Source: Lepidodermella squamata
Taxonomy: Eukaryota; Animalia; Gastrotricha
Reading direction: 5' to 3'
DNA length: 64,000 nt
Assembly: GCA_047495785.1 (NCBI GenBank)
Contig: JBLDXI010000042.1
Location: 434,001-498,000 of the forward strand
This document shows positions 5,574 through 55,628 of this stretch, one piece after another (positions within the stretch are counted from its first letter, which is position 1; each line of letters starts with the position of its first letter). The notes beneath the pieces were generated by a model. It ran no database searches. It was given only the letters and a program-made list of their open reading frames with translations, and was not told the DNA's origin. A program made the translations under genes and the position numbers.

Positions 5574-5910
5574 TTAATGATCTGCTGGTCCGCAATATCT
5601 CACTTTTATAGCTCTTTTGGCCGTCCGCTACGCCCATACGCCTTTGCCTCCATTTAGCCTGGTGCATTCCTCACGGGCCTCTGCTTCGCGACCGTGACCT
5701 TTGGGGAAGCAAACTGTGTTCGTCTTGCTTTTGATTGTGATTGTTTTTCACTCGCCAGGCCAGCCCTTTCCATCAAAGCATGAACCACTAGAGTAGCCTT
5801 AACTAGAGTAGAGTTGGATAACACGTGAAATCAATGGAGAATTAAATCTTGCATGCAAATTGTATCTTACGAATTACGAAAGGGGCAATGATTAAAACAA
5901 GCTTAGCCGT
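5574..5910 (-). pseudogene. MAKL-family peptide precursor pseudogene (paralog of 14054-14396)
   Basis: Start ATG->ACG (5910). Exon 2 reads CFDGKGWPGE*KTITIKSKTNTVCFPKGHG-REAEAREE-CTRLNGGKGVWA*RTAKRAIKVRYCGPADH with premature stops at 5748-5750 and 5628-5630. 3'-UTR stem-loop retained. Confidence 0.85.
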
Positions 5911-6306
5911 GATGTTTCGAGAGTTTTCCACGGTGGTGAAATTCGAACTCAATCAGCGAACTTCGAACCACATGCGAGCGAAAGTAGCAGAAATGTGTGG
6001 TTTCAGGCTCAAGATTGTATAGCTGAAAGTTCCGAGAGTGGTAAACATGAGCCCCAGGTCGGGCCTGTCCATGGGTAGCCTTTGAGGGATCAGAGACCAC
6101 AGCCTAAGAATGACGCAAGAAGTTTGAAAATCCCTGTAACAGAGGCTTCTGTTTCTAATAAAAAGGTCTCCGAGTTAAAAAAAAGATTTCTGATTTATTT
6201 CTAGTAATACTGTGACGGTAATAATATAGTGGCATTACGATAGGTTATGATGTAGTTGAATTCTGCTTTTCCTTAACTTGAATGTTTTTTCGTTGAGATG
6301 CCGTGT

Positions 6307-8154
6307 TCAGCATTCAGCAAGTTCATTGGCCCGAGTTGCACCTCGCGCCGTCAGCAGTTCCGCAATTTCGGCATGGTCACGACAAATCGCCAGGTCGAGC
6401 TCAGATCTCCCTTCGCTATCAATAATCTGCGCATTTGCACCGCGCTCCAACAACAGGCGTACGACCTCGACGCGCCCATTGTAGACCGCCATGGTCAACG
6501 CCGTCCAGCCATCCTTAGTCGTAACCTCCATGTTCGCGCCTTTGTCCAACAACAGACGAACTAGCTCCAGTTTGTCATTAGCGGCCGCCTTCATCAAAGC
6601 CGTCCTGCCGTAGATATCCTGGACGCCGATGTTCGCGCCGCGCTCCAGCAACAGCTGTGTCGTCTCGGCGTACCCATAGTTGGCTGCCCATAACAACGCC
6701 GTCCAGCCTGTGGGATCCGTGGCCTCGATGTTGGCACCACGGTCCAGTAATAGACGCACAACCCCGGCATTTTTGGCCGCTATAATCAACACCGGGTGCC
6801 CATTGTACTCTGCCTTGGCATCGATGCTCGCGTTGCGCTCGACCAGCAGTCGCGCTACTTCGAGATGCCCCTGGTCGGCCGCCAGCATCAACGGCGTCAA
6901 GCCGCGGTCTTCCACGGCATCGAACTCCGCCCCGCGATCAGCGAGCAGCTGAATAATTTCCAGCCGTTGCTCTGGTTCGCGCGTCACGCACTGAGTTAAG
7001 CGGTGAAGCAGAGTACCGTTTCTAATCCAGAACGAGGGACAATATTGGTGTAGCCTGGGATCTCGCCAGTTCGGGTCGAAGTTGTCGTCGGTTGCCGCGT
7101 CGATGGCCGCCACAAGTCGCCGCGCCTCAGTCACGTTCAGGGCCTCGCCAACTGCCGTTGATAACTCCTCGTAGAGCAGGCGTACCTGAGTAGATTGAAG
7201 AACAAGCAACAAGAAGTGAACGGCGGGGTTTGACGAATAAATGTTTGGCCAGCCAAGTTTTGGATCATGAGTTTTTTCAAAAAAATGCGCTTAAAATTCA
7301 ATTATATTGGGCAAAATTGTCAAATTTGTTGGAATTGTTGGAGTTGTAGTGAAAATTTAAATTGTCAAATTTTAAAATTTCAATTTTCGAAAATCGAAAT
7401 AATTAAATTTTCAAACTTCAATTTTCCAAAATCGAAAATGTTAGCTTATTTTACTTATATTACTGATTATTATGCTTACAAATATGTCGACTACAGCAGT
7501 TTGTTTTTCGGCCTTCGCCACTTCCAATGGCGTGAAGCCGTTTTTGAGCTTCGCGCTCTCGAAAGCACCTTTGATTTGTGCGTTCTTATCAGCACCTTTA
7601 GAGAGCAAAAAGAGAACGGCGTCGACGTTCCCCCGACCAGACGCATAGAACAATGGCGTGATGCCATCCTTAGCCGTAGCCTCGATGTTCGCCTTGTGCT
7701 CTAGCAACAAGCGTATAACGTCGACGTTTCCGCTGTAGGCCGCCTGATGCAACGCCGTGAAGCCATCTGTATTGGCATCGATGCTCGCGTTGCGCTCGAG
7801 CAGCAGCCTCACTGCTTCGACGTGCCCATTCGCGGACGCCGACATCAACGCCGTCCAGCGTGAGTTACCTTCCTTCGCATTGACATCAGCACCACGATCA
7901 ATGTAAAGCTGAGCGATTTCTAGCCGCTGCTCAGCTTGCCGTGACGCTTCTGCACATTGCATCAAGCGGTGAAGTAGCGTGCCGTCTTGTAGGTAGAATG
8001 GATGTTCGCATGTGTTGTGTGAGTATGGATCGATCCAGTTGGCGTCGAACTGGCCGTTTGACGCTGTGTCGATCTCTTCCACGAGTCGCTTCACTTCAGT
8101 CACGTTCAGAGTCTCCCCACTTGCGGTAGACAATTGCTCATAGAGCTCATGAAT
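6307..8154 (-). CDS. Ankyrin-repeat protein made of two tandem homologous units (exons 8154-7480 and 7185-6307); 5' exon not resolved
   Basis: Many G-x-T-[PA]-L-[HM]-x-A-A...LL-x-x-GA repeats. The two ORF-track ORFs join in frame through a phase-0 GTAAGC...CTCAG intron (7479-7186); both units start with an 'LYE[EQ]LSTA.GE.LNVTE..RLV' helix. Confidence 0.85.
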
Positions 8155-8193
8155 CTGTGTAGGGAGAAACAGAAATCCAAGATAAGTAAGCAC

Positions 8194-9516
8194 CATAGAG
8201 AACGTAGTGATCAGAGTGCGCACTCACGCTTTTTTCTTGAAACAAAAATTTTTTTTGTGTGTGCGCGCATCTTTTTTGAAAACATGCATGTTTTACAGTG
8301 TAATCTTGTGTTTTTCAACATTTTTCCGCGGAAATAGGCCGTCCAGTATTTTATGTCAAGTGACACCTTCCGAATAATTCAAACCTGCTCTTTCATGTAA
8401 TAATGGCCGCTTATTGCCGAAAATTACCTGTCCTGGCGATTTCCCAATGGATATCGAATTGCCCCCTATGAGGTCGTCCTCACTCACTTAGCTATTAGCA
8501 GTTACTAGTAACTACCAATGTCCCGGTTTGGATACTGTAAGATTCTTCATGAAACACGCTTTCCGCAGATATATAAAACTCATACTTTTGGCCACGCTAT
8601 GCGTGCAAAATGAGCCTTGAACTTCAGCGCATTTTATTCTGATTTTTCGGAGCAATTGAAAATTGAGCTTTGAAAGTTAAATATTTCTTCAGCGATTTTT
8701 CAGTTTTTATTACAAAGCGTGCTGAGTTCGTTGTTTAGCCTTCCTGAACTAATTTTACATGAGCTTTTCAAATATTTCGGTTTCAGACCTATAACTCGCT
8801 TCCATTATCGGCAAAAACGGGGGAATCTAATGTGGCAACTGAATCTTGGGAAACTTCCAATTTCAGGTTCCTGTGGAGGCACTGGTATAACTTGGTCTGC
8901 TGTTTTGAGCTTTCAGCTAGATTCCTCACCTTCAAATATCCTAAATGAGATTCAACTGAGTGCGTGAGGTTATCATTAGTGTGTGCAGTGAAGCAAATTA
9001 CGAGTGTATGCCAATAATTCAGATTTTTGAGAGCGCATTTCGAAAATTTGCATTTTTGGTCGAAGAATTTTTGAGACTGTGTTTCTCGACAACCATGATA
9101 GCTACGAACGCCGTTCAGATATCAATTTACTCCTTGTGCCTTGATCTTTGCAATAACAATAAAATTTCACCTGATTAACGCTTCTGATAAGGTGGATAGC
9201 TCGTTTTTCGGTGCAACAGGTCGCTAACGTGTTTGCATTTGTAAGTCGGAGAACTCATGATACGAAAATTTCGGCATGGTGGGATTTTCAGGAAGCGATA
9301 GAGCGAGAAAGGATCTACGTGATGCATATAATGAGAAAGAAAAATAAAACGGCCGATTTCAAGTAAAAATCATCGAAAAAATCAAAATTTGCATGTAAAA
9401 GTGCTATCCAAGGTTGTCGAAAAATTCGGCATTTAGAATTAGGGAGGGGTTTTTCATTTATTTTTTGTTTCAATTTAGCATCGTGAGTGCGCACTCTGAT
9501 CACTACGTTCTCTATG
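8194..9516. mobile_element. Non-autonomous DNA transposon, ~35-bp TIRs, 8-bp TSD (P-element- or hAT-like)
   Basis: TIR CATAGAGAACGTAGTGATCAGAGTGCGCACTCACG at both ends; TSD GTAAGCAC at 8186-8193 and 9517-9524; lies just upstream of the ankyrin acceptor site. Confidence 0.9.
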
Positions 9517-11263: not shown

Positions 11264-12098
11264 AAGATTTGCTCTAAAATTGTAATTCGTACATCCTATA
11301 TATATACCTCACTAAAATGTTTTCACCGAAATTTGATCCACCATAGGATTCTTTTATTAATTCTAACGCGCACGCCAATGCGCAAATATCGGCACGTGGC
11401 ATCCGCCTTAAATATGAAAAAATGGTAGCCAGCAATGAAGCGCAACGTGGTAGCTTCAATTAGGTACACTGCTAATTCACAATCTACAGCTGCCAAAACG
11501 ACGGCAAGATAATTTATGCCGTTCCATGTCCGTTGCTCAAACCTGATAGAGGCAGCACTTGAATTTAAATTACAAAAATTACACTGAGCCAACTGATGTT
11601 CCACCTAGTGTTCCAAAGGGATCCGTGTGTTAGGTCCTATTTTATTCCTAATAGCGTTATCCGGTACAATTTTGAGCACCACCTACGCGAATTTCTGTGT
11701 AAATTCGGCACATGCGATTTCGGTTCATATTTTCAAGTTTCTGGCCGATTCGTATCATTCATCGCGGACTACACGTTCATATTCCTCATCTCTTGATTCT
11801 ATTTTTTGTCAACTTAACTAACTGTTTATAACACAGTTGTGCACAGTTTATCAAACCCTAGCAAATCCATTGTCTTTTTTTACAGCTGAGCTTTTCCACT
11901 TTTTCTAAAAACGGATGAATGGCTCTTAAATAAATAAATAAATATTAGCTCCTGCAGGTTTTATTCATTCATTATAGCAAAGCGCAAAATGGGTAAATAT
12001 CAGCAACCTTGTGCAGATGATAGTTGTGTGACATCGCTCTGCCTGCAACGCAGCAGTCACCTCATCCCTCCATTTCGGCCGATTTTCCCCGATAGAAT

Positions 12099-12615
12099 TC
12101 ACTTTCCTATGGCCTCGCAAATCCTTTCCGTCCGACGTATAGGAAAAAAGGAAATGTCGCGCGTTTTCCATTCACCTTTCTGGCCATATCCGTTCGTACA
12201 TTCCTTGGGAGGAGCTGGTGTTTCCTGGTGATCGGCAGAATATTGCATGCATTCACCTCGCCTATTACGATAGACGCAATGACGGGCCGCTTCTTCCGGT
12301 TGTGACTCTGCTTCGCGTGGCTTGGGAGGCTTGACGCAAAATGTATGTTTGCCGCCATATTTGTCTGTGTACGTTTTAACTACACCTTTCTCGCGTGCCT
12401 TGTTTTCACATTCTCCGCCATCTCCCGGCGCCGGTTGGGATTCAACTTTGGTAGATTTGGCTGCTGTGCCGCCTTTGCCCGCTCTTACACCGTAAACTGC
12501 TGCGACAACAAACGCAGCCTGTTGAGAAAGACATGCGAAATCAGAGGAGAATGAATAAAAGATACTGCATATTCCAACTTACGATAAAAGCGATCATTAA
12601 AACAAGCTTCGCCAT
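12099..12615 (-). CDS. MAKL-family secreted multi-peptide precursor, 150 aa (exons 12615-12583, 12518-12099)
   Basis: MAKLVLMIAFI|AAFVVAAVYG-VRAGKGGTAAKSTKVESQPAPGDGGE-CENKAREKGVVKTYTDKYGGKHTFC-VKPPKP-REAESQPEEAAR-HCVYRNRRGECMQYSADHQETPAPPKE-CTNGYGQKGEWKTRDISFFPIRRTERIC-EAIGK*. GTAAGT...CAACAG phase-0 intron; AATAAA downstream. Confidence 0.9.
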
Positions 12616-12619: not shown

Positions 12620-12775
12620 TGCTTCAAGTAGGTATAGTAAAGTAATTCAACTTGTTATTGAAGTGTGAAAACAAATGAATGAAATAAGTTTCGATAGCCG
12701 ATTCGAAAAGCACTCATCCAGTAGCAGCCAGCTGCACATACAATTATCGACAAGATTGGCGTGATGTCTAGACCC
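12620..12775 (-). promoter_or_regulatory. Conserved upstream block of the MAKL family (also 13450-13520, 14400-14562, 26370-26530, 27540-27705, 30145-30310)
   Basis: Shared collinear motif TCTAGAC-TCACG-CAAT...TGTCGAT...TGCAGCTGG...TACTGG-TGAGTGCTTTTCG...TATTTCATT...AACAAGTTGAATTA at a similar distance (~155-170 bp) from the ATG. Confidence 0.7.
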
Positions 12776-14053
12776 GGTAGGCTGAACAAACAAATAGAGA
12801 AGGGGTTCAGGCTGGTGAAATCAGTCGAGCGCTGAGCCAATCGGCGATGACGCTGCCAGGAGGATTCGTTAGAAGTAACTTTCATTGCGGTGTATTTTCT
12901 GGCGAATCCGGAGGTCCCTGAAGGAGCAATGTAAGTAAGGAAGAGAGCATTTCCTAAGGAAGTTCCGATCCGATTGGTGCACGTTTCAACCGATTAGTTT
13001 AAGCTGGAATCTCTCCGCTCGCTGTGATAATCCAGCAAACTCAATGTAAAACATTATTCTCACGACTGGAAAACCAATCAACTTGTTAACAAATGGTTGA
13101 AAGCCTCTGTGAAGATACGGTGTGTGCTACGTGCGCCCTTAAAATAACTTCGGGGCTGGTCAACAATCTCAAGAATCAAATGAAAGCCAAGATCACAATC
13201 TCTTGATGCTTTCTCTGAAGATTCGGGCGGACCTTGAGCTTTGACCTCACGTCTACGAACCCATTCAAGGAGCATGAAAGCACTGGATCCCTGTTGGTTT
13301 CACGAGCTTTGGGTCAAAGAAATGCTAGGATTCAAAGTAAAATACAAAGTATACACAAGCTACTGCCAATTTCATTCAGTAGAGACTAGTAAACTTGAAA
13401 CAAAAAATCAGGAGCTGAGATGATTGAAAAGCACTGTTAGGCCATTCGAAAAGCGCTCATCCAGTCATCATCGAGATGAACATGCAATTGGTCGATGACG
13501 CCAAAGGCCATCCAGACTGTGATGACTGAAGCAACACATGGAATTAGCTCAAGTCTAAACGGTCAAGTTTTTTTGGAATCATAAATAGCATATTCATCCA
13601 AATGTGCACATCAAATGAGCCCCCCGGCGTTACTCTGCAGCAGCTGTTGCCATTTTAAAAACTTTCTGAATTAAAGCGCATTACAGCCCAATTGGCATGC
13701 CAACTTACAATGATTATGAAAACCTGGGGTGCGAAGTATAGGGGCGCTGGGGTGTTACGACACCACAGCTCCGATAATCCCTCCAGAGGAATGTTGAAAA
13801 ACCATAGGGGGACCCTTTGTTTCTTCTGCTGGAGAACACTTCAGCTCCTGGATCCTACTTCCTAATGAAATCTCAAATGAATATGGGGAATATGAGACTA
13901 CGCATGTTACACACTGCTGATTTTATTGAACAGGCAAACGTGGGAGTTATAAATATCAGCAGCCATATCCAGATTCTCACGTGACATCGCTCTGCTTGCG
14001 GTAGCTTGCAGCAGTCACCTCATCCTTTTCGTCACGCCCTTGTTGCCAAATCA

Positions 14054-14396
14054 TCAATTCGCAGCTCTACACAGACGAAATTTTTCACCATTTTTGAAGT
14101 TGAGCGTCCTCCATACGCCTTTGCTGCCATCTGGTCTCTTACATTCCTCGCGGGCTTCTTCCTCCGGTTGCCATTCTGCTTCGCGACCGCCACCTGTGTG
14201 GAAGCAAACTGTGCCCGTTTTGCCATTGATTGTAATTGTTTTCCACTCGCCTGGCCTGCCTCTCCCATCAAAGCATTTGCCACCGGCAACTGCTGCAGCA
14301 ACGAGAGCAGCCTATTAAGTTAAACACGTGGAATCAATGGTTAAAGAATTGGTTCATGCTTACGAAAACAGCGATAATTAAAACCAGCTTTGTCAT
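14054..14396 (-). CDS. MAKL-family secreted two-peptide precursor, 96 aa (exons 14396-14364, 14311-14054)
   Basis: MTKLVLIIAVF|AALVAAAVAG-GKCFDGRGRPGEWKTITINGKTGTVCFHTGGG-REAEWQPEEEAR-EECKRPDGSKGVWRTLNFKNGEKFRLCRAAN*; GTAAGC...TAATAG intron. Confidence 0.9.
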
Positions 14397-15998
14397 GATA
14401 TGATTCGAGCTTTGAAGTATAATAATTCAACTTGTTATGATAAGGGAATAAAAACGAATGAAATAATATTTGTAAGAATTCTCGAAGAGCACTCATCGAG
14501 TAGCCAACCAGCTAAACATACACTTGATAGCCGTGTCGATGATTGACGCGTGGCGTCTAGACTATTGTGCTGTCTATACTGAACTAACATAATATGAGGG
14601 GAGTAGGAAAGTAGTTAATCTAGAGAAGCTGGGAAGAACGCGCCGACCCTGTTATTCCATGTTTCAGTCGAACCGTTCATCAACCGATCAGATATACGCT
14701 GGAAGCTGGAATCACTAACAGCCACTATCGGCTACCTACCTTTCCCTATGGATCTTCCGAAGTGGAAAATCCACAAGGGGGCCCTTTGGGCCCGAAAAGC
14801 CCCTGGTTCGAGGATCCTACTTCGCGCACTGGGACCGATTGAACTGGCAGGGATGATCCTCACCATCCCTCTCTGGGCAAAATAGTGCCGTGACTTCATG
14901 AATATCGCCGGCCGCTGCACCGGCGAAGATCAACTACTGGTTTCCGCTGGCAACCAACAGATGCAGATTGCATTCAATCCCAATATCCCGAATCGATCGA
15001 TTTCAGCTACACTCACAGGCAATTTACGCTTAATCTCTATTTACGGGTAAAATTTGAGCGCGTTTACGGGTAAAACCTCTCAATAAAAATGACGCGTAAA
15101 TATTGCCTAATTTTACGCTTAAATATCTTTTACGCTTCAATATTGACCTAAATTTACGCGTTAATATCCCGACTAGGCAGACATTAACGCGTAAACCCTC
15201 AATCAAACGTTATTATTGATATTATTCTGAAATGAATCTCGGGAAAATTCCTCTACTTGCGCACATGAGGAATAAACTCAACAAAAAGACCATTGATTAT
15301 ACGAAGCGTGTTTTATTTCAGGTTAAACGTGGTATTTGAATTTTTTCTTAATTAATTTTCCAGCGTGTTTCTAGGTTTAATTAATATGTTGTTTTGTTTA
15401 ATAAAAATGCATTAAAATACAAGAGAGATTTTTTACATTTTTGCTTTATAATTTGAAATCCTTCGATGAGCGCACGTTTCATACAAAATATAGGTGATGA
15501 TACACGAAATCAAAGGAAGAATGAGAAAGAATGAGGAGAAGTCACAACGGGAAGAAGAAGACACATGTAGTAGTATACAGAGATATTATTATTCTCGATT
15601 AAAAAATTGAATATTTACAATTTGAATTTTTCCCTAACAAAAAGGCTTATATAATAACAGCATAAATACAGTATGATACAATAATATTATGGAGGAGACG
15701 CGACCACATGGAAAATACACCGCTCAAAACAGAAAAATATCTACACTAGACGCCATAAAACATAAAGCATGAAACGGAATAACAATGTTTATTGTCGCTG
15801 GATAAATTAAGGCGTTGAATTTCGTTGAATATAGTTTGAAGAGGAGTGTTCGGAAGATTATTTTGCAAAAACGATTCGAGCTAACAACTAATAAATTGGA
15901 AGCAACGAGAGTTTAGAAATCAGCGAAATTATTTTGAACTATCGGATGTATGTTGTGTACTATTTGGATAATATGAGACGAACATGAGGCAAAAACAG

Positions 15999-17531: not shown

Positions 17532-20500
17532 TTATTCGGTTTCGATTAAAAACAACACCCTTGGGGTTGCTAATAACAATAAGCGGTCTGCCTTACGCAG
17601 TACCGGCCAAGGGAAGCTAATTTGAGACAGAGGAGCTAAGATGGATTTGCCACCATAAGACACAATTTGATACGAATTAGTTCCCATAAAATAATTGCAA
17701 TTCGCTTCCAGTAGTCGAACTAAAATTTCACCGTCGCTGCGGTTATATACAAAGTGTTCAATTTTAAAAAAAATAAGCTCGCAGCCGTTAGCCAGGACGA
17801 TGTCATTCGAGTTGAACGTCGATCCGCGCCAGGTAACCGATTCGATTACAGCGTGATCGATTCCCAGCATAGCCACGTCCTTTCGACCATCCACAGCTTT
17901 TCCAATGGACTCGATTTCTCGGATTTGATTTTTCGATTCGAGGCCGAATTTGACCAGACGATACGCCAAGAAATCGGCCACTGATTTTGGCATATTAACG
18001 AAATTTCGCCAAGGTTTTAGCGAAATCGGCGCGTATGTGGCTTCCCACCTAAAAAATGGAGCAGGCAAATTAAAGTAAAATACAATGATGACCGATATTA
18101 TTTTCAGTTTGATAAAATTGGGCAGTTTCCACACGGGCATTGAGGACAGAATGATAACAGTAGAAATTCGCGCCCAAGTTTTGAAACGGCAATTAATTTT
18201 AGAAATCGAGAAAAAATTCGTAAAATGCCACCTTAACTTCTCGTTCAATAAAATACATGCAAAATGCGATCGTAAAAGTTTTTCCATGTAAAAGTTCGGG
18301 GAAATAAGAATAACCATGGTTATTAATGATCCCGCTTCTCTACACGTTTCATTTCATCGCTGACTGGAATCGCTGAATTTTGTTTGAATATTCCCGAATT
18401 TCAGTTATATTCTCGAATAATGTAGATATTGTTGTCTGGAAAAAAATCCATCGAAAAAATGAAGAAATCCAGTAATTACACCACAAATTTCGAAAAATCA
18501 AATAATTTTAAAAGGGCCAGGCAAATTTAACAAAATATTTAGCTAATCTCGAAGAACTAGCGAATAATTGTAAACTCAACATTAGAAATAACCTTACCTC
18601 ATGGCCCAGTAATTTCGAGCCGGGCCGAATTCCAACATTTGTGGAACGAAGTGTAGACTCCAGTGATGCTTGGCGACTTGTTTCGATTTAGGGTAGGCTT
18701 TCTTGAACGCGATGTGATGAGCAGTAGTTAGAGCTTTGACTTGCTCAATTGATTTCTGATCAATGATGGGCGAAAGAATGAGTTGAACCATCAAAGCCAG
18801 CTGGAGGATCGACGCGAATTGAACGCAGTCGGTTGGTAGGACTCGTTCAAGGGCGAGTGGCAGGTAGACCAGCAGTAGCAGATGCTCGATTCCTTTCCCG
18901 ATTGGGGAGTAATCCGTCTTCTTGACCAACGGCAACTTGTGCTTGGCGAGAAACGTCTTGAACGAGGCCAATTTATCGGCGAGTTGCTGGAAATTGATCA
19001 CTTTCTCGACATTGATTAGCCAGTTGAAAATCAGGCGAATTTCTCGAACGACAACGCCCTATATAAGCTTATTATTAGAAACCAACATAATATTAATATT
19101 TTATTGAACTGGTACCTGCAAGAATACATGAAAAGCATCAAAGAGATGCTGCTTGAAGCTGAAAATCGGCATGTCGAACAGCGCACTTCGGAAGTGCAAG
19201 CCGAAAATGCTCCTCAGCCTTTCACGTTCTTTTGGATTGCGGGCATTTTGGATACGCCTCAGCTGCGCGATGATGCTACCGCGAGTTCGCACGAATTTAT
19301 CGGCAACACAAACATGAGCTGATGATTCGAAAATAATTTCAATCAATTTTCAATCAATTTTAAAAATTTGGAATATCACAGATTTTGATAAATTTGAATA
19401 GTTTAAACAAAATTCACCAAAAATAAAGGAGAATCGAGCTTTAATTTGATATAAATAAACCGTAGTTCTGAATTCATAGGGAAATATTTGGGAATTTAAA
19501 ATTATTGAAAATAAAAAGAAAATTCATAACTTACGTATTTGACTGCCGCCGATCATGCATTGCGAGCATAAGGACTTCATGTAGAAACCGAATGATGCGA
19601 ACATGCCAAGGATTTCGTGGCAAGCCTTGCCGTCACCCAGAAGGGCGAGGAACTGCACACCCACTCTGATCTTGCAACCAGGAATTTCAATGCCGTTGAG
19701 ACAAAGGTCACGCATCGCTTCCAGAAAATCGGACAGAACCACACGCCAAGGTTTGTCGCCGCCAAACTTGAATTCTTTCGCGTTAGCTATGGCTAGCGGC
19801 ACGTGCGAAGTGATTCGCGAACGGATATACTGCCAGAGGTTAGAAGGTTGCCATTGAATTATTCGCATCAAGTTGCTTCCGCGGCGGGCACCTGAAAAAA
19901 AGTCGTAAAAGTTTCGTAAAAGTCATACCTTCTGGCCAGAAAAATTTCAGAAAAATTCGAAAAAATCACGAAAAAAGTAATTAGGTATGTCACTTCTTAA
20001 TGAGATTAAAAACGTTCGGAAAAATTTGAATTTGTTGACGGAAAATTAACGAATCAGTTATCGTCGGGGTTTTCCGGCTTTTCTCCGGTAAATTTTCTAT
20101 TTCTTCGGTTAAATCGCGGATAAAAGATGGAATTTTCTCTCGGTAGGTTCAATTGTAAAAAATTGTTGAATTTCCTACAACAAGCTGGCAAATTAAAAAA
20201 TTGTTGCACAAATTCTGGGACACTACATAAAAAAAATGCGAGGTGTTCAACTAAAACAATCATCTCAAATTCACTGAACCGGAACCCCGATTTAAAATAG
20301 ACCCTGTAATACATATCAAGCCAAATTTGATCGTGAATAACTCATATAATAGTTCAGAAATTTTATCGAAATGCAATTTATCAATTTTAGAATTTATTGG
20401 AGATTTATTTTCTATTTTCAAGGAATTTGTTTAAAAAAATGACAGATTTTTGAAAATATATAAATCGAAAATACACTCACCTAAAGCGTTTGTCATCCCA

Positions 20501-30699: not shown

Positions 30700-30741
30700 G
30701 GATGAGGTGACTGCTGCGTTGCATGCAGAGCGATGTCACGC
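30700..30741 (+). promoter_or_regulatory. Conserved 3'-UTR stem-loop of the MAKL family (other copies on minus: ~5505-5553, 12028-12066, 13976-14025, 25602-25649, 27165-27210)
   Basis: Consensus GGATGAG-GTGAC-TG-CTGC-(7-12 nt variable loop)-GCAG-RGCGAY-GTCAC. Confidence 0.7.
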
Positions 30742-42700: not shown

Positions 42701-43896
42701 TGAAGGTGGCGACTCAGGATCATCTCGACGAAACAGTCTCATCACCGAGTCGGGCAGAAATCAAAGCTGAAATCGCCGAGACTTATTCCGCCCCGATGGA
42801 AGAGAAGATGATGGAGGCTCCTCTTGAGAAAAGCGATGAAGTCGATGTCTCGAGCCTCGAACAACAAATACCTGCCGATTATTCAATCAATGAGCCTCAA
42901 ACAACTCCAAATGCTGCTCAAGACTCAGCCGAAATAATTCAAGAAGAACTGCCTATTGATGAGCCATTTGACTCTGCGGATATCCCGAATCCTGACGGAG
43001 CTCCACTAGAATTCTTCGACGATGAAGATGATCTACCTCAAGCTAGGGCAAGCTTCAGTGATGACTTCTTCGATCAACCCGATGAAAATCTTCAACCGAA
43101 CCCTGAACAATGGCAAGAGCCGGACAGTTCGACCACAACTGAGTTGGTATCAATGCAAGCGTTATCGCCATCAACAGACGGACCTCTTGATGGGGACGAG
43201 GATGGGGTCCCGGAGTCAGCTGGCGAGGATGATTATTCACGAGCTTCGGTAAGGGTCTTCGAAAGATCGGAGACGTCTTCCCCTGAAAAACTCGATGAAG
43301 CGGATCCGCAACCAGAAAAAGACGTTACAGCAGAGGCTGGTGAAGATATCGATCCTAAATCTCCTGGTCAAAGTGACGTTCCTAAGGGATTCGAGGATAA
43401 TTCGGGAACACCTGCCCTGGAAAAGGATGATTCGCCTAAAAATCTGAAAACCTATTCGATGGTTTTGAAACAGGCCAGTGGAATCCCGCGTCCAGCTTCC
43501 CCAATATCCCCGTCTATCCCGACCAGCCCGCCAATGCAATCAAGGCTGCCTAGTCACATTCCAATGCCAGCTTCAAGACCAATGTCTCCGGAATTAGGTC
43601 AAAAGGTTCCTCACATTCAAGCTGAACCTCAATTTCCTTCTGATTTTCGTGAGAAGGAGGTTGAGCGAACCTCGGAGAAGTTAGCCGAAAAAAGCCAGTC
43701 GAAGGTCCAGCTCGACGTACCTGGTCTGAAAGCTGATGATCCTGAAAAGAAGAGCCTCGCTAGCTCGAACGAGAGCGTTAATTCAGCCGATGCCTACTTC
43801 AGTGCTGCGGAGGAAGATGACTCGTCGAAGCCGTCAAGCAAGCCAAGTCAAATTCCAGTATTGAAACCTGATGCTAAGGACAGTGATAAAAAATGA
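33760..43896 (+). CDS. SH3BGR: SH3BGR (thioredoxin-fold) domain protein with a ~2,770-aa acidic low-complexity tail, ~2,884 aa; exons 33760-33804, 33861-34046, 35363-35458, 35516-40181, 40235-43896
   Basis: Spliced N-terminus MVIRIFSSRVPGNSS|IRHQQRHLFDILQTKKIAYDEIDITDPWNEEWKLFMLENCPPDPGRNRPIPPQIFSGDAYCG|NYEDFAIALENEQLWTFLRL matches the SH3BGR pattern (MVI..., PLPPQIF, GDY..F..A.E...FL.L). All introns are GT-AG and in phase with the two long E/S/D-rich ORFs. Confidence 0.85.
34248..34928. mobile_element. PIF/Harbinger-like MITE in intron 2, carrying two divergent tRNA-like units
   Basis: TIR AGGTCTCCGCACAAACTC; TAA TSD (34245-34247, 34929-34931); tRNA-like sequences at 34412-34487 (-) and ~34698-34777 (+). 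Confidence 0.85.
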
Positions 43897-46198: not shown

Positions 46199-46540
46199 AT
46201 GACACGTTTAGCCCTTGTCACATTCGTTTTCACCGCACTTATTGCTGGTTCATGTAAGAAGTCCCATTTAGAAACGCCAGTACTTATTTATTCGTCATGA
46301 ATTTCAGTTGCTTTCCAGTGCTATGTCGGTACAAGTCAAGGTTCAAAGAAAGAGTTCTTCAAGGCTGACAATTGTGAGATGTGCACGAAGCGAATCGATC
46401 AATATCTCGATATCATGACTATCACGAAATCCTGCGTCAACAAAAAGCCGGAGGGCGTCGAGATGAAATGCACGACCACGACAACTGGTAGAAATACTAC
46501 AAAATATTGCAACTGCGACTCTGAGCTGTGCAACTGGTAA
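46199..46540 (+). CDS. Secreted three-finger (Ly6/uPAR-like) protein, 95 aa, no GPI tail; exons 46199-46253, 46308-46540
   Basis: MTRLALVTFVFTALIAGSFA-FQCYVG...CEMCTK...KSC...C...CNCDSELCNW*; 8 Cys, typical 'CY' start and 'C-x4-CN' end, phase-1 intron after the signal peptide. Not in the ORF track. Confidence 0.85.
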
Positions 46541-48191
46541 CACTGAACATGTTGAGACTGATGAGATTTAATTTGATTCACAAATGATTGATCTACTAAA
46601 ATGTTGCATTCAGCTCGACTTATTTCTTATAGCAGACCATTAGCCCGAATCTAGCCGAACCTTACTCGAGAGGTCCAGGCAAAAAAAACCGAAAAACACC
46701 ACAGATCAGATGAACTCGGGGCTGAAAATATACCTAATCGTACCCCACGATTCTTCCGGCAGTTTTCCGAGTTCACTCTAGCTTTGTAATGAAGAACGAG
46801 GTGGCGCGCAGCGTCGGTTCGATAAAGTATTAGCACCAAGGCTATTTCCACCAAGGCAATCAACTGTCGTTATCACCTATAGAGGAGAGATATATAGGAG
46901 CCCGCATTAGAGACGTCACCTCCCAAAACCTTCATCGTCAAAGGACGTGAGGCACAAGCTATTTGGCAAATTAAATTAAGCAGCTAAACCGCTTTTTCTG
47001 CCTTGATGGCACGGAACAGGGCAAGATTTTTCCTTGACAGCAAAAATAAGGACATTTTATTAAGAGGAGTTTCAAACAAATTCAAACATCCCATCACTGG
47101 TTTCTCAGAAATTTCGGCGATTTTCTACAGTGAAACTTCCGCTTTTGAATCAGAGGTAAACATGAGTTATCCCACGCCTAAATACGTAACATTGCAAAGC
47201 TTTAACAATGCCTCGAGTCGCAAAGTCTTTACCGTGTTAGCGTCAGTAAACCATGGAATCGAATACCCTATAGGCCCACTGCACGAAATCGATGGAGCCC
47301 TGGACCAGCTGAGGAAGTGAGCTGATTGGCTGATCGAATTGGCAATCCAGCCTATTGACGATCAAGTACATTGCGTTTGGAACTTCATCCCGGCGTTGCT
47401 ATCAAAGCGTGAAATGAACCTGATTTGGCTTGGGAAATCGGCTGATACGGATAAAATGTTGACCGCGTTTCAAGAAATGGCTCGCTATGATCCGAGAATC
47501 GAACTGATACACAGCGAATCCCTGTCTCTATGGGTTGTTGGCTCTCACGGTTCAGATTAGCCAAGGCATCGAGTTCTTATCCAAACTTCATGGATCTACT
47601 GACCCTCTTACAGCTGAAATTCCTGAATATGGCCGAAGCTGGTGCTCTGTCGAAATGTTGATCGAAGTTGTAAGAAGTTCGTTCTACTTCGGCGATGGAA
47701 TTATTAAGGATATTAAGGGAGATGAGTTACTAGATTCGGTTGGATTGAGCAGGTCGGAATTGTTCGAAAAACTATCGAAAAAAGTGGTGGATGCAGACCG
47801 CAATTTAGCCTTTAACATTTGGCCCGAAAATACCCCCTAGCTCGAGGATCCTACCTTTATCGTTGCTATAACAGAAGGCGCAGTAATAATTCAAGGGCAA
47901 GCATGCCAATCTGAGAACAATGCATCGGGTTATTACGAATGGGTCTGCGGCTTTCTATGCTTGGTGCCTTTTTCTACGTCTATCCTTGGTGCATTTTTGC
48001 GCTTACTCTTGTTTATCGCTTTCATCATCTCTCTAATGTTTTTCGCCATTCAATGCCATATTTGGAGAAAGAATCGCCGATTAAACAATCGAGTATTTAC
48101 CCAGGTGACGAAGGAATGAAAGGGTCTTATCGCAGTGGGAAACCAACTATTATCCTTTCATTTCTTCATCTTTAATTTTTATTTTCACTTC

Positions 48192-48442
48192 ATGGCAAAA
48201 CTGGCTGTGCTTCTTGTCGCTGCTCTGGTAAGACTTGGCTAATTTTTTGTTTCAGACGCATCTGAATGGCGTAACTTTCTCTGCAGGTAGCTATTTTTCT
48301 AGTGATGGGCGCCGCTAGCTTCAGTGCTAGCGATGCTGCAGCTTGGATTGGCAAGGAATGCGTCAGATATAGTGGCAGGTCGGGTGTGTTTCGATACAAC
48401 TACAGTATCAATAAGCTTGAGTGCGTCGCTAGAAGCGGATGA
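48192..48442 (+). CDS. MAKL-family single-module peptide precursor, 63 aa (exons 48192-48227, 48287-48442)
   Basis: MAKLAVLLVAAL|VAIFLVMGAASFSASDAAAWIGKE-CVRYSGRSGVFRYNYSINKLEC-VARSG*; same C-x4-G-x2-G-V module; C-terminal Gly; AATAAA at ~48546. Confidence 0.82.
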
Positions 48443-49327: not shown

Positions 49328-51589
49328 TCATTGCAGATATTGGCTACCGGGCTGTAAAGCAGTGCGTGATAATGCTTCAACGCGAAAATCTGAATGGCAC
49401 TTTCGAAGTATCAAGCTGTGAGATGCTGAAATAGCAAGCAGGAATACAGATAAAATGGTATCATATTGAAAACTAGGCGCCATGATGTAACCAATAGCTG
49501 CAGGTGCGCAAAACAAAGTTGCTGTGATTCCCATCAAAGAATTACCCATTTTGATAACTGGCTGCTGCCAAAAAATTACGCATCATGGCTTGTAGTTTCA
49601 GCGCAAAAATTAAGCCAATTAGAATCAGGGCAAAGTTCAGTGCGACAAGAGAGCCAACCCAGGCAGATGCTTGCTTAGATTGGCATAACTTCCATTGCCG
49701 TATTGTGTAAGCATCGGCAACTTCATCATAGAGAGCGTATGAATCCAAAACTAAATCAGCAGATACCGGGTCCACAACTAACCAAGCCAAGACGATTGCG
49801 AGATTTATAACTGTATAGATGACCGTGAATGAAGCCTGGCGAACTTTTCCGATTTCAACGTCAATTATAAGATATTTTTCAGACTGAACTGTTTGGAAAG
49901 AGGCAAATGAATTCATTTGAGGCTCTCGCCCACGCCTAATGTTGTTGTGAGGTCGTAGAACAGCGTAGTAATTTGCGATCAAAATAACTATTCCAATTAT
50001 GAACGAGGAAACTCCGCCAGTGATAACAACAATCGCGATGTTACAAACCGCATTTGATCGTAAATTGAATGGCGTAGAAATCAGCGGAACGAACAGTGAG
50101 AGACAGAAATAGCTGATGAGTGAAATTGCATTCCTCACCACATCTTTTCTTCTCTGTTTATCTTTAAACATGAAAACAGCTTGTAAAGGGAATAATGTGA
50201 TCGCAGCAACCGTCAGAATGGCGTAAACGGATAATGGCTCTCCCGTAATCACATGAACTACAGCAGGCGAGTCGCGAGGTATCAAAGACACGTCGACGGG
50301 TTGAACTGGTTTGAATAGAAGAATATTCGGCTCTTTAAAATTCGTTGCATTTGTTAGCACAGTTCCGATGTATCGAACAATTAGGCCGCGGCCCTGTTGC
50401 CACGTCATAACAGCTTGAGGCTCGTAGTCCCACTCCCCGCGGTTCGAGTAATGAAAATTGGCGAATCTCAAGCTTTCGTAACGAATCGAACTAGTTGTTT
50501 GGTTAGCAACTTTCATGACAAACTCCGGATGTTTCTGGTAATCCTTCAGGCTCATGTTGAGCGTCGATAACTTTTTCTCAGTTTCATTCAATGCGACAAT
50601 GGCTTGAAGAGCTGCGTCGTAGCAGGCAGTGCGAAGGGTGTCGCCAGATCTGGATAGATTTTGCCCTCTCTCTGCCAAGATTCTCTCGAACCCTGTTTGA
50701 GTGTTGCCTAATGCGTCGATTCGGGATGAAGAAACAGGCGCAGCATCGATAGAGCCAACGACAATCACTGATTTTAATTGCTCGATGTAATTCTCCCTGG
50801 AGCAGCCACTAGGGTAGCTCTGGCCGGGCGATGGTTCTAAAAAAGCAGCCGATTGGATTAAGAACGTAAATCGTCGCCCTGTTATCCCGTTTTTGAACGC
50901 TTCGCATAGAAACAGTTGCGAAACTCCCGGCTCTGAAGTTTCCAAAGTGAAGATTCTGACATCTTGTTTTTTGAAAAGATGCATAAATTCATCATTAAGA
51001 TCAAGAAATGCCTCGAAAGGTTGGACCTTAATCCCGTTAGCTGCTGCAATTTCATGGAAAAATATGCCAGTTTGAACAGAAAACACGTTGCTTAAGTCCA
51101 CGATAACTGCCATTTTCTGCCATGGTGTGAATTGCTTGATGAAATGAAGACGAGTAACCAGGCCTAGCTCTATCGGGCCTCGAACTCTGTACATGTTAGG
51201 GTAAAGATCGCGTCTAGCTGTCTGGCTTGGAGCAGTGCAAGACGCGCCTATCATTACCATATTCATATGATTCGCAATCGATCCCCAAGCTTTGCAACCA
51301 GGGGTAACGATTGGGCCAACACTTATTGGAGATTTGTACGCTGGCATGTTTTGCCCAATGAATTTTACGCCCTCTGCGGCGGCGTTGGCGGTGTAAACTT
51401 GCTCGTCTGTGTGCAAGAATTTGACTTGGTAGGGAGTAGGTTACGTTCGTTGACGATTTCTCCGACCAAATTTACAGCGAAACGGCATCTGTCAAAAAAT
51501 GAGGGCAACTGGGCGAGAATCACCAGTTCGCTCTGGTTCTGAGTATTGGCGCGATGTATCAACGTAAAAAACAACAGCAGTTTATCCAT
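49328..51589 (-). pseudogene. Intronless class C (GABA-B-like) GPCR, VFT + 7TM, with two frameshifts (~51433, ~49550)
   Basis: Signal peptide and 'VNERNLLP' in one frame; VFT ('RDLYPNMYR', 'WQKMAVI', 'ACYDA') plus TM1-5 ('WLVVDP') in a second; TM6-7 in a third. Pseudogene or consensus indel errors. Confidence 0.78.
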
Positions 51590-52249
51590 TTTATCAAAAG
51601 AAAAACTGCCAACTGAAGCAGTGGTAAATGAGACTATTTACGCCGTAACAAGACTCGTTGAATCTATGCTTTTTGCATAAGCAAGAAATTAGGATTCCGT
51701 TGAAACTTGTTCCTCGGTCGAAGGGTGATGTTTTGCTCATCCATGCTCATCAATTAGGAAGCACGTAGGGCGTGCCAGCAATTAGCCATAGATGTCAGTG
51801 AGCGCTTGTTCAGAACGTTGGCTTAACGTTAATTAACCCTCTCAAATCGTTCGCCCACGTAACCCACGGATGCACGCACAATCGTATGTCGGTGGGTGTT
51901 TATCTATCCCTTCCCTGTAGGAAATTCTTACGCCAACTAAGGCTGGATGCAGGGATCAAATATCGACCTAAATCTTGCGCTTAGATAGCTTTAAAATTCA
52001 TCAATATTTTTGCCTATAGTGAACGTCAGAAATTCGAATTTTAGGAATAACGTTTTGCTTTCGAGCTACCATAATGCTTGCTATAAGTATATAATCTGCC
52101 GAATAATTTTCACTTTGTAATCTTAACCAAATTTAAACATCATTTGTCCTCATTAGTAAAGATTTCAAGTGTCAATTATTGTCGTTGCCTATAAATTCAG
52201 AAATAAACATAATTTTCTTAAAAAATATAGGCTGGATAGCTGAGCCAAT

Positions 52250-52433
52250 TCAATGTTTGTATTGGCGCGATACCATACCAGGGAGACAAGGGCTTGCTTG
52301 TAATGACCTGGTATATCCTGAGCTGCCTGTAAAGATAAATGTGGTATTCATGAGCATTTAACATAAAAAACAATCCTAACCCTTTAAAGTCTTTAAAACC
52401 CTTTGAAACAATAGCCGAGGCGAGCTTTGCCAT
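52250..52433 (-). pseudogene. Degenerate MAKL-family copy
   Basis: CACTTC-ATGGCAAAGCTCGC start and ~180 bp of upstream sequence homologous to the 53641 gene; signal peptide and splice donor degenerate. Confidence 0.55.
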
Positions 52434-53078
52434 GAAGTGAGAATAATTAATGCAAATGAAATTATATAAAAGAGATGAACGAATGAACAATGGACGATGG
52501 ATGGTAAAGTTGTTGTAAAAGCTCGCCAAAAACATCTGGGTAAACACTCGACTGGTAAATCGATGATTCATGCGTGCAGAGTTTAATACCAACCGAGTAC
52601 ATAGATAACATAATATACAGGGTGTCTTTTTGCAGTGGCAATGGAAAATATACTGCTGAAAATATAAACCTTGAAAAAAAAGGAAATCGATACGTTTGTT
52701 GTTTGCATTCAATCCGTTTTTTTTCATGGCCTTTATGAACGTATTGCTCCTGAAAACAGTCAACGAAGCAGGGGGGTTTTTGTGACCAAAGGTCCCCTTG
52801 TTTTCGTGTTTTCCACCTTGGCCCTCCAACTGGGGGCTCGATACCCCTCGATACCCTTTCTTTGCACATTCAATAAAATTAAGACGTATATAACTGAAGG
52901 TTTAGACTTTAGTCTCAAAGCTTGATATTCAGCCAAGATGGCGATTTTTATTTCATACATCTAATGAAAACAGCTGATAGCTCTTCTCGTTAGAGATTCT
53001 TCAATTTCTCCCTCCCAGAGTATGACCTCAACAGCTTGCCTTTCTCGCGCCTCACTTCATTTTCCATTGCCCTTCTCC

Positions 53079-53641
53079 CTAGCGCCTCGGCATCCTACCA
53101 CTGCTGCGCTGCGCCTCAATCAGGTTAGCTTCTGCCTCACGCCTCGGTCTCCGACCAGAAATGCTGCGCTGCGCCTCCATCAGGTTAGCTTCTGCCTCCC
53201 GCCTCGGTCTCCGACCAGAAATGCCGCGCTGCGCCTCAATCAGGTTAGCTTCTGCCTCACGCCTCGGTCTCCGACCAGAAATGCTGCGCTGCGCCTCCAT
53301 CAGGTTAGCTTCTGCCTCACGCCTCGGTCTCCGACCAGAAATGCTGCGCTGCGCCTCCATCAGGTTAGCTTCTGCCTCCCGCCTCGGTCTCCGACCAGAA
53401 ATGCCGCGCTGCGCCTCCATCAGGTTAGCTTCTGCCTCCCGCCTCGGTCTCCGACCAGAAATGCCGCGCTGCGCCTCAATCAGGTTAGCTTCTGCCTCAC
53501 GCCTCGGTCTCCGACCAGAAATTCCGTCACACGCCACGACGGCAACAAGTGCCTATAACAGAAAAATGCTCTTTAAATCAGATTTTAAGAAAAGCTCGAG
53601 ACCCATACCATAAAAGCAAGAGCTGATGCGAGCTTTGCCAT
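53079..53641 (-). CDS. MAKL-family polyprotein precursor with 8 short peptide units, 168 aa (exons 53641-53609, 53552-53079)
   Basis: MAKLASALAFM|ALVAVVACD-[(G/S)ISGRRPR-REAEANL(I/M)EAQR]x7-SSGRMPRR*; GTATGG...TTATAG phase-0 intron at the family position. Confidence 0.9.
53102..53522. repeat. 7 x 60-bp coding tandem repeat
   Basis: Seven near-identical 60-bp units differing at three positions. Confidence 0.95.
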
Positions 53642-54184
53642 GAAGTGAGAATAATTAATGAAAGTGAAAATTAACGATGAACAAATGAGCTGCTGACAAT
53701 TGGTGAGTCGTTTTAAATGCTCGCCCGAAACATCTGGGTAAACACTTGACTGGTAGATGATTCATGCGAGATTGAATAGCAACCGCGTGGATAATATAAT
53801 ATGCTTAGGAATGCCAAAAAAACTTGAGTTAGCTGAGTGCGTTGTCATCTGTCGCAGCTGAACGTTTGGACTTTGGACTTAAAGCGTAAGCCAAAGGACA
53901 ATGACATTTTCTCTTTGTGCTTCACCAATTTCAGACATTTCCCGCAGGTTAAGGGTTCTTTCAACCTTCCTTCGGAGGGAGTCCCGGAGCTGGGGTGCCG
54001 TGACAACCCCGCACACCTATATTTCGCACCCTGATTCACGTTTTACGTTTTTAAGCTTTCGAAGAACTATAGAAAATAATATATGAAATTGTGTTGGTGC
54101 ATGATGAGAAGCAATGAGAAATTATGGTTCTAGGGACCTAACATGTTTTCCATAGTGCGACGATAGGAGAATACGACCAGCTCA

Positions 54185-55095
54185 CGGGGTGGTGATCGTA
54201 AGCTCCTTAACCCCACCTTAATTCCTTAAGTGCTAAGGTTGGTGATCGAAAGTTAAGGTCGCCCTTATCTTTAACTGTTTTTGCGAAATAAGGTCAACTT
54301 AAGTCGAGGTGTGATCGAATGCTCAAGTTAAGGAAATAAGTAAACATTTTGTACTTTTTAACAATAAGTAAGTGATCGAAGGAAAAAGACGCCTTAAAAT
54401 GGACTTAAGGAATATAAGTTAAGGGTTGTCACACCCCTAAGTGTAAGGGACCTCGAGAGGTCCCTCAGCCAACTGGTTGTCGATATTTCACGAGGAAAAA
54501 CCGGGTTTACCGGGCGTCGACGACTCTGTCGTGCCACTGCGGACCTATGCCAAGGCATTGGTGTCGAGTTTTCCTGTAAATTGCGCAAAAATATTTATCG
54601 ACAATGAAGAAAAGATAAGTTGGGTGATCGTATCACGATTTTTCTTATCTTAGTGAAAGTTTTAGCGGCTACGGACAGGTGAGCAATCTTGAATTAGTGG
54701 AGCATCGCGGAGAAAATATGGGTTCCGCAATACTAGAAATAAAATAGAATCGATTACAAAGCTTCTAATCTTGACCAATGAAAATATAGGACTAATAATT
54801 GGGACACAAATTTGTCTCTAGAAATTAGGCCATCTTTTGGCATTGTTGCGCAATCACTTAAGGTCACATTAACTTTGATCACTCAACTTACGAATCTCAG
54901 TAAAACGTTAAGGTCGGTGATAGAACGGTATCGAGATCCGGATAAGGTACGATAACATTCCTTTAAGTAGACCTTAACTAAGGGCGCCTTTGATAAGGTG
55001 AGTTTCGATCACACACCAATTTAAGGTCAACTTAGCAAAGTGAACTTATCTGAAAAGTTACCACTTAAGTTAAGGTCCGTACGATCACCACCCCG
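54185..55095. mobile_element. PIF/Harbinger-like non-autonomous element, 911 bp
   Basis: TIR CGGGGTGGTGATCGTA; 3-bp TSD TCA; internal GTGATCG and TTAAGGT repeats. Confidence 0.85.
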
Positions 55096-55389
55096 TCAGA
55101 ACTAGTTTCGCACTCAAAAAAAACCAAAACCCAGAATAAACACATAGAAACACATAGAAAAGCTTCCGATCTTTTCGAAATACCCGAACATGGAGAAACC
55201 TCAGCATGGAGATTCATGCAGGGTAATTATATCACCACAGAACACAGTATCGCGATGAGTATGATGCGATATCATGAAAAGGCCATCGGGTTCAATTTCG
55301 AATTAAACCACGAAGCTAGCGGATGCTACAATTACAATTTTTCGACCGTTGTTCCTAACCCCAACTTCAAGGTCCGAGAAGCCTGTGAG

Positions 55390-55628
55390 ATTAGTGAAAC
55401 AATCAACCCGCGGATTATATTTATTCCATATGCTCCCTCTTATCACCGCAGTATTTTCACATTTTACAGTCACAGTAGAATCCAAGCCTATCGACGTTTT
55501 CGTACCAGGTTGTAATTTTCAGTCTAATTGACGCTGGCGAACAGCGTTACGACAACAATAGCTGCCTGTCTGAAAACTCACTGAAGTTTAGTTATGTTTA
55601 AAATTAAAGCCAATGTAAGCTTTGCCAT
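55390..55628 (-). pseudogene. Degenerate MAKL-family copy
   Basis: TTC-ATGGCAAAGCTT start (MAKLTLALIL), acceptor ACAG|GCAGCTATTGTTGTC (AAIVVV), frameshifted module CENTAVIRGSIWNKYNPRVDC. Confidence 0.6.

Follow-up and report, generated by a model that had tools for sequence, protein, structure and literature searches.

A cluster of small two-exon genes lies in a 64,000-nucleotide (nt) stretch of the Lepidodermella squamata genome (contig JBLDXI010000042.1, positions 434,001 to 498,000; hereafter the window), eukaryotic, invertebrate-type DNA with a G+C content of about 0.42. An earlier note, made by reading the sequence, had proposed about 11 such genes encoding modular secreted peptide precursors, and we found all 11 sites to be as described, with seven intact genes (G1-G7) and four decayed copies (D1-D4). 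The loci are genuine genes and not chance open reading frames (ORFs), and the cluster of about eleven is real but unannotated. Two-exon genes this small usually go unannotated; the intact genes encode very small proteins of 62-211 residues. A core group, consisting of G1-G5, two pseudogenes and a promoter relic, extends over 5.4-30.7 kb, and a distant second group with G6, G7 and two relics over 48-56 kb (Table 1).

All seven intact genes share one layout, which agrees with the short start exon and the intron inside the signal peptide that had been proposed. Exon 1 has 11 or 12 codons and opens with M-A/T-K/R-L followed by hydrophobic residues, the intron is 52-64 nt long, GT..AG, in phase 0 and with a pyrimidine-rich acceptor, and exon 2 adds ten further hydrophobic residues before running in an open frame to its stop. 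Retention of the intron shifts the frame or adds a stop in 7/7 genes, so the long open frame can be reached from the start codon only via the predicted splice. Because both exons start strongly hydrophobic (mean Kyte-Doolittle values of 2.1-3.7 for exon 1 and 2.0-2.6 for the first ten residues of exon 2), the intron splits a signal-peptide-like segment. An AATAAA follows the stop in every intact gene at a distance of 106-139 nt (136 nt in G1). Splicing is a prediction from sequence, in a pattern common to the paralogues.

The decayed copies were read in three frames as they stand, and only their breaks were counted. D1 matches G2 (70% identity over 347 nt; nhmmer E = 1.8e-8) and retains the element of the 3' untranslated region (3'UTR) described below, D2 matches G5 (78% over 383 nt; E = 2.1e-45), and D3 matches the upstream region and exon 1 of G7 (77% over 211 nt). 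The fourth copy, D4, was detected at nhmmer E = 1.1e-3. A solo promoter fragment is a relic additional to the sites in the earlier note. Together, the four decayed copies and this relic show the birth-and-death evolution that had been suggested for the family.

Table 1. Genes, relics, shared elements and neighbouring genes, numbered from the first nucleotide of the window.
Feature	Position	Strand	Description
G1	12099-12615	-	exon 1 12615-12583; intron 64 nt; exon 2 12518-12099 including stop
G2	14054-14396	-	exon 1 14396-14364; intron 52 nt; exon 2 14311-14054 including stop
G3	25670-26365	-	exon 1 26365-26333; intron 60 nt; exon 2 26272-25670 including stop
G4	27230-27534	-	exon 1 27534-27502; intron 62 nt, donor GTTAGT; exon 2 27439-27230 including stop
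G5	30312-30668	+	exon 1 30312-30344; intron 57 nt; exon 2 30402-30668 including stop
G6	48192-48442	+	exon 1 48192-48227, 12 codons; intron 59 nt; exon 2 48287-48442 including stop
G7	53079-53641	-	exon 1 53641-53609; intron 56 nt; exon 2 53552-53079 including stop
D1	5460-5944	-	G2-type, decayed: start codon gone, two premature stops
D2	24933-25320	+	G5-type, decayed: start codon gone, three in-frame stops, at least one frameshift, 3' part absent
D3	52221-52616	-	G7-type, decayed: promoter and exon 1 retained, splice donor lost, no repeat exon downstream
D4	55390-55746	-	decayed second-group member: exon-1-like start and hydrophobic stretch; no usable intron, two stops, no loop
Solo promoter fragment	13420-13497	-	first group; no gene behind; nhmmer E 2.5e-9; blastn 81% over 52 nt
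Promoter motif, G1	12729-12744		
Promoter motif, G2	14509-14524		
Promoter motif, G6	48092-48107		
Promoter motif, G7	53731-53746		
Promoter motif, D3	52533-52548		
Promoter motif, D4	55706-55721		
3'UTR element, G1	12008-12069	-	
3'UTR element, G2	13966-14027	-	
3'UTR element, G3	25591-25652	-	
3'UTR element, G4	27151-27212	-	
3'UTR element, G5	30698-30759	+	
3'UTR element, D1	5495-5556	-	
NRF-domain and Acyl_transf_3 gene	1239-3269	-	
Class C receptor pieces	49545-51416 and 516-1028	-	ANF_receptor and 7tm_3, very divergent
Ankyrin-repeat ORFs	6310-8223		
Ly6/uPAR-like Quiver (QVR)-type gene	46199-46537	+	two-exon, small, secreted; between the two family groups; exon 2 E 6e-5, just under cut-off
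Cys-loop channel ligand-binding match	56242-56976		weak

The genes are held together by their flanks. An nhmmer profile running from 160 nt upstream to 130 nt downstream of the ATG, and so reaching from the upstream region across exon 1 and the intron into exon 2, returned G1-G5 at E = 1e-73 to 1e-86 (G4, 3e-73; G5, 7.5e-85) and D2, the solo fragment and D1 at 1e-45 to 1e-8, with D4 and G7 marginal at about 1e-3. As judged by sequence, the membership of G4 rests firmly on these flanks. A DNA pattern across the promoter and exon 1 matched 5/5 genes, where chance gave 0. Averaged over pairs of G1-G5, identity was 0.73 over the 150 nt upstream, 0.81 in exon 1, 0.61 in the intron, 0.73 in the signal part of exon 2, 0.43 in the mature region (0.41 when shuffled), 0.66 in the 3'UTR and 0.51 past the poly(A) signal (0.50 when shuffled). 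In these five genes conservation is higher in the promoter than in the intron, and the mature coding parts resemble one another no more than noise, in line with the conserved signal and hypervariable mature region that had been claimed. Across G1-G5 as a group, the poly(A) signal bounds homology on one side and a point ~150 nt upstream of the ATG on the other, each transcription unit covering about 0.6-1 kb; in two gene pairs homology runs 300-500 nt further upstream. Near G5 and D2, inverted copies of the far-upstream and downstream flanks of G5 (28952-29092 versus 29979-30120; 24758-24864 versus 30810-30917) may have been left by rearrangements or by additional copies since lost.

Within the promoter we found a 16-nt motif, AGTGTWT-N3-CAGSTG. 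When scanned over the 64 kb window with one mismatch allowed, it occurred nine times (0.25 expected), always 78-131 nt upstream of the ATG of a family member, and its carriers include G6, G7, D3 and D4. An E-box-type CAGCTG, CAGGTG or CAGATG is present in nine of the nine family promoters, and the core group has in common an element further upstream that resembles a cyclic AMP response element (CRE). At the sequence level the proteins of the second group are not detectably similar to those of the first, and a BLASTP comparison of G7 with G3 found no similarity; the two groups appear related because they have in common the promoter motif and the gene layout, because G7 and D4 score marginally with nhmmer, and because G6 and G7 match over 42 nt around the ATG. 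At the other end of the unit, the 3'UTR element lies ~35 nt past the stop in G1-G5 and D1 and is better conserved than the coding region. Its predicted structure is a 13-pair hairpin; the alignment has no covarying pair, which neither supports nor refutes the hairpin.

These boundaries bear on a reading in which the locus holds no functional family, being either a transposon-derived or selfish repeat, which the earlier note had named as the finding to look for against its own proposal, or a set of dead relics whose frames are open by chance. Four of the 11 copies are decayed, repeat arrays hold antisense frames open too, and ORFs that look transposase-like by eye lie nearby (17.5-21.4 kb). However, homology is confined to the gene unit and its promoter, no transposase or other Pfam domain lies in the unit (terminal repeats were not searched for directly), and splice sites, starts and stops are intact in seven copies that have diverged to ~60-70% in their non-coding parts. 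Conservation of the promoter above that of the intron argues against it as well, as do the internal units of G3, with a dN/dS (ratio of non-synonymous to synonymous substitution rates) of 0.12-0.18, and the antisense ORFs over G2, G3 and G7, which yield only sub-threshold Pfam noise. We regard this reading as highly improbable.

Downstream of the signal segment, the predicted products of G1-G6 consist of loops with a Cys at both ends, separated by linkers. We took Cys residues in consecutive pairs, which we infer to be joined as disulfides; their number is even in G1-G6, and G7 has a single Cys. Loops are 10-28 residues long, and canonical ones have the signature C-x4-G-x-[KPS]-G-x-[WVILF]-[KR]-T ... 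C. The motif that the earlier note had given for basic two-Cys loops, C-x3-4-G-x2-G-x-[W/V/L/F]-x8-16-C, found 10 family loops and one unrelated match, against 0.6 per shuffled window, and the first loop of G1 is one residue short of matching it; the claim stood for these loops, but it does not extend to G7, which has no loop, and the loops of G4 and G6 fit weakly. The proposed alternation of acidic spacers with cationic loops is borne out by net charge, which is +2 to +7 in all loops and 0 to -5 (neutral to acidic) in all linkers. A piece E-[AS]-[EQ]...E-E-A-A-R ahead of the Cys is common to the linkers of G1-G3 and G5, and an R-E-A-E junction to those of G1-G3.

The number and kind of modules differ from gene to gene. 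G1 has three loops, of type A, a short 10-residue form and type C (charges +3, +2 and +3); G2 has two canonical loops with an acidic spacer between them; G3 has four modules, three of them in a 135-nt tandem array at 25756-26167; G4 has two divergent loops; G5 has two, a short loop and a type C loop, joined by a proline-rich linker; and G6 has one. Type A modules are rich in Lys, Tyr and Gly. In place of loops, exon 2 of G7 encodes seven tandem units.

AlphaFold, run with a paralogue alignment, modelled the spacer and second loop of G2 as three beta strands (mean predicted local distance difference test (pLDDT) score 76, ~88 over the loop). In this single-module model the strands flank a turn, with block-mean pLDDT of 78-89 across the module. 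The G3 model has four hairpins (pLDDT 82-89) and spacers that are of low confidence or helical, and its predicted template modelling score (pTM) is 0.25; confident hairpins on flexible spacers at such a pTM suggest beads on a string. The loops are thus predicted to form beta-hairpins strung on acidic spacers. Independent modules on flexible linkers would also suit uncleaved secreted or membrane-anchored proteins with a structural or adhesive role, rich in Lys, Gly, Tyr and Pro, and several other features point the same way: the absence of dibasic sites from G1-G5, the long hydrophobic N-terminus, and the Lys/Tyr/Gly-rich type A modules, which are under purifying selection. Against such a role, the proteins are only 62-211 residues long, their loops are hypervariable among paralogues, and alternating acidic and cationic segments are typical of pro-peptides; we consider it improbable.

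Relationships among the paralogues record how the family grew. G1 is a mosaic, its 5' half like G3 (86% over 574 nt) and its 3' half like G5 (76% over 291 nt). The last module and 3'UTR of G2 are closest to those of G3, D1 pairs with G2, and D2 with G5. Given these relationships, growth has proceeded by gene duplication, module duplication within genes and recombination between paralogues, accompanied by losses. The three 135-nt internal units of G3 differ mostly at synonymous positions, giving the low dN/dS noted above. Paralogous loops gave dN/dS values of 1.3-2.9, on few sites (15-60 per comparison).

To search for relatives, we used the exon 2 products as database queries. A Pfam scan gave nothing above threshold, finding neither BRICHOS nor any other domain. 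In a word-indexed protein search, exon 2 of G1 drew 17 candidates, none significant. HMMER with exon 2 of G3 against 1.84 billion protein representatives returned one match, P0001, a repeat protein encoded on an ENA contig; it failed against the module profile (hhalign E = 0.63), so we rejected it as spurious. Aligning 11 modules left no conserved stretch; a pattern from a 4-module alignment gave 72 matches in a metagenome scan, 0 of which were confirmed, and the DNA pattern across the promoter and exon 1 gave 0 metagenome matches. Sequence searches of the PDB produced chance-level matches only (E = 0.88 and 1.9), Foldseek only generic hairpins (best E = 0.36), and Rfam no family in the window. 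As had been suspected, the module is not a named family; by its sequence it is a new family with its own signature. The proteins of the source organism are absent from the databases searched, and relatives in sister species could exist unseen.

Judged by homologues of a neighbouring gene, the source lies outside all annotated proteomes. The nearest relatives of the NRF/acyltransferase gene in the window were on ENA metagenome contigs, at 40-45% identity and eukaryote-like. Five such contigs, L001 (ERZ27332993 k141_758231) and L002-L005 (G+C content 0.38-0.40), have NRF/acyltransferase genes arranged in tandem and split into ORFs as they are in the window, which suggests that the contigs stem from a related, unsequenced small animal in those samples; no member of the peptide family was found on the five. 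The best named acyltransferase matches were annelid, mollusc (chiton, bivalve), brachiopod and spider proteins, at 31-34% identity.

A conserved signal, a pro-region and a hypervariable, Cys-stabilised mature part are also the elements of conotoxin-type organisation, and tandem duplication with pseudogenes is again shared, as might be expected of venom or repellent toxins directed at prey or predators. Each module has one disulfide, however, which is atypical of animal neurotoxins (mostly three or more), and no toxin family was matched in Pfam, PDB or Foldseek. We give a toxin function little weight.

In the mechanism that we favour, the locus would be a tandem array of related small genes that evolve fast and encode secreted pre-pro-peptides. 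A common promoter of ~150 nt, with an E-box-like motif 80-130 nt upstream of the ATG, would drive each unit. Exon 1 would supply the charged start and the first half of the hydrophobic core of the signal peptide, and exon 2 would complete the signal peptide and then encode the product, with core-group units ending in the conserved 3'UTR element and a poly(A) signal. The product of G1-G6 would contain between one and four cationic loops, with a single disulfide closing each into a predicted beta-hairpin. Once the signal peptide is removed, the linkers could act as charge-neutralising pro-pieces; their cleavage after Arg, followed by trimming by a dipeptidyl aminopeptidase, may yield cationic hairpin peptides. 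Freed in this way, the peptides would most plausibly act on microbes outside the cell as host defence. New variants would arise through duplication of genes, duplication of modules (G3) and recombination between paralogues (the G3/G5 mosaic of G1), with regulatory and signal sequences held constant and mature regions free to diverge. We infer secretion, processing and defensive function from this overall architecture, which is, by analogy, the pattern of host-defence peptide families.

Secreted defence peptides are then the most likely role, to which we assign a probability of about 0.5. The odds are only about even because G7 resembles a neuropeptide precursor, G1-G5 have no dibasic sites and the N-terminus may be an anchor. 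The following observations weigh against a defensive role. The N-terminal hydrophobic segment is 18-23 residues long, so that it may be an uncleaved signal anchor, most of all in G6. Around the loops of G1-G5 there are single-Arg sites only and no dibasic sites, which makes the release of separate peptides uncertain; between modules, G1-G3 have a single Arg followed by E-A-E, and G4 and G5 have no such site between their loops. Some products may stay whole, since the proline-rich linker of G5 and of the 3' half of G1 contains no obvious cleavage site. Most known beta-hairpin antimicrobial peptides (AMPs) are shorter than these loops, in which no amphipathic pattern is obvious. Against profiles built without the gene in question, the loops of G4 (hhalign E = 0.042) and G6 (E = 0.0055) were weak matches. 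Relaxed constraint alone would give a dN/dS of ~1 in the loops. G7, finally, consists of seven 20-residue linear repeats without a Cys loop, and its likely product, judged by its sequence, has no net positive charge.

The units of G7 are near-identical (Tandem Repeats Finder: 60-nt period, 7.0 copies, 96%), each with a furin-type site (R-x-R-R), a stretch of E-A-E-A dipeptides and a Gly ahead of Arg-Arg, and in sequence G7 looks like a neuropeptide-type precursor. Of the toxin or AMP arsenal that the earlier note had envisaged, what stands is an architecture that matches multipeptide AMP precursors and beta-hairpin AMPs; the uniformity of the arsenal does not, given G7 and the lack of dibasic sites in G1-G5. 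The family might instead encode precursors of signalling peptides (neuropeptides, hormones or water-borne pheromones), with loops and linear repeats serving as receptor ligands. The G7 units have the usual amidation and dibasic layout for such precursors. E-box-type sites, here in all nine promoters, are bound by basic helix-loop-helix (bHLH) factors of secretory and neuronal cells, and class C receptor genes (ANF_receptor and 7tm_3) lie inside and beside the cluster. Yet dibasic flanks are absent from the loops of G1-G5, and neuropeptides are usually conserved, whereas here the mature regions of paralogues are at shuffled-level identity with loop dN/dS of at least 1. The search of 1.84 billion representatives gave no homologue, and the proximity of the receptor genes may be coincidence. 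A signalling role is, in our view, rather unlikely.

A more novel reading can be put forward tentatively. In it, the two-Cys loop G-x-K-G-x-W-K-T would represent a disulfide-stapled beta-hairpin scaffold not seen before, and the locus a combinatorial generator under one shared promoter, with acidic spacers as the recombination joints at which loops are duplicated, swapped and recombined among paralogues. One animal lineage would thereby maintain a private set of extracellular effector peptides that can be renewed rapidly; this is possible, but the odds are against it. More speculative still, the peptides could be ligands co-evolving with the interleaved class C receptor genes.

Lineage-restricted families of secreted Cys-rich peptides are common in invertebrate genomes. 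If made and secreted, the products described here would enlarge the small class of disulfide-closed beta-hairpin peptides by a new sequence family. The locus would then be a clean example of repertoire growth: flanks, signal exon and intron position stay fixed, and modules multiply by duplication, are shuffled and become divergent. It also illustrates the way in which short two-exon peptide genes evade annotation based on ORFs and homology. Since the members in the window could be recovered with a profile of the promoter and exon 1 and with the 16-nt motif, flank-based searches may help to uncover hidden peptide genes in other genomes.

For the class C receptor ORF, a word-indexed search found nothing at E<=1e-10. 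A block of four ORFs at 17532-21390 (-), of 261, 135, 115 and 319 residues, has no Pfam match; the first opens with a C2H2-like Cys/His pattern, and by eye the block looks transposase-like. Two long open frames of 1553 and 1209 codons at 35543-43896 (+) encode an acidic low-complexity protein rich in Glu, Asp, Ser and Thr, with an internal duplication of ~590 nt, a strong A-over-T skew and no Pfam domain found. We rejected a retrotransposon as the source of these frames, given an acidic low-complexity protein lacking a Pfam domain, and an exact look-up of the 1209-residue ORF returned no record.

Features at the two ends of the window were also recorded. Positions 1-523 and 7158-7680 carry the same 523 nt without a single difference (100% identity), a 38-nt tandem repeat among them, which points either to duplication in the very recent past or to an artefact of assembly. 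A 232-residue ORF at 63083-63778 (-) matches Pfam Pox_A32 above the family cut-off (E = 1e-7). Pox_A32 is the packaging ATPase of large DNA viruses and of Polinton/Maverick-type elements. Between 60000 and 64000 the G+C content falls to 0.32-0.34 and palindromic repeats occur at 60582-60704 and 60939-61402, and the margin of an integrated virus-like element may lie here.

Among known systems, several share parts of the organisation described here. Conotoxin superfamilies, mussel MgCRP-I and frog skin AMPs likewise combine a conserved signal and flanks with a hypervariable mature part, fixed Cys positions, tandem duplication and pseudogenes (PMC4558851). In those families a precursor contains a single mature peptide with 4-6 or more Cys; the present precursors have up to four modules of 2 Cys each, and we found no homology to any of the three. 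Neuropeptide polyprotein precursors resemble G7 in their many identical short units, basic flanks and Gly before a basic pair (principle in PMC5850478); G1-G6, in contrast, have neither the dibasic sites nor the layout with an amide-donor Gly, are hypervariable, and have no detected orthologues.

Single-disulfide beta-hairpin AMPs such as thanatin and arenicin have been described (PMC13001179), and thanatin has many precursor isoforms (PMC8767025). Like the loops predicted here, thanatin, arenicin-1 and -2 and the tigerinins are cationic, one-disulfide hairpins cut from a larger precursor (PMC13001179, PMC4410394). The loops of the present family are 19-28 residues long, with mini-loops of 10-14 residues, whereas the known peptides are 11-21 residues in their entirety. 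They also differ in their own signature, G-x-[KPS]-G-x-[WVILF]-[KR]-T, sequence searches found no similarity, and the BRICHOS domain of arenicin/capitellacin-type precursors was not found here by Pfam.

The closest analogues in design, compared by organisation, are the insect multipeptide precursors (PMC3415428), including Baramicin (PMC8423362). Apidaecin, ant hymenoptaecin and Drosophila Baramicin are likewise encoded with a signal peptide followed by tandem units in one exon, varying in repeat number (PMC3415428, PMC8423362, PMC9246212). The insect precursors use an RR site and E-A/E-P dipeptide spacers and mature like yeast alpha-factor (PMC3415428); the R-R-P-R-R and E-A-E-A junction of G7 is a close fit to these spacers, and the R-E-A-E of G1-G3 is shared among their own. 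There is no sequence similarity between the two, and the units differ in kind, being disulfide-closed loops here and linear Pro- or Gly-rich peptides there. G1-G5 moreover have single-Arg sites in place of RR, and differing module types stand in mosaic order among the paralogues. The locus is, in sum, a new sequence family with a clear history of modular shuffling, inside a well-known kind of system.

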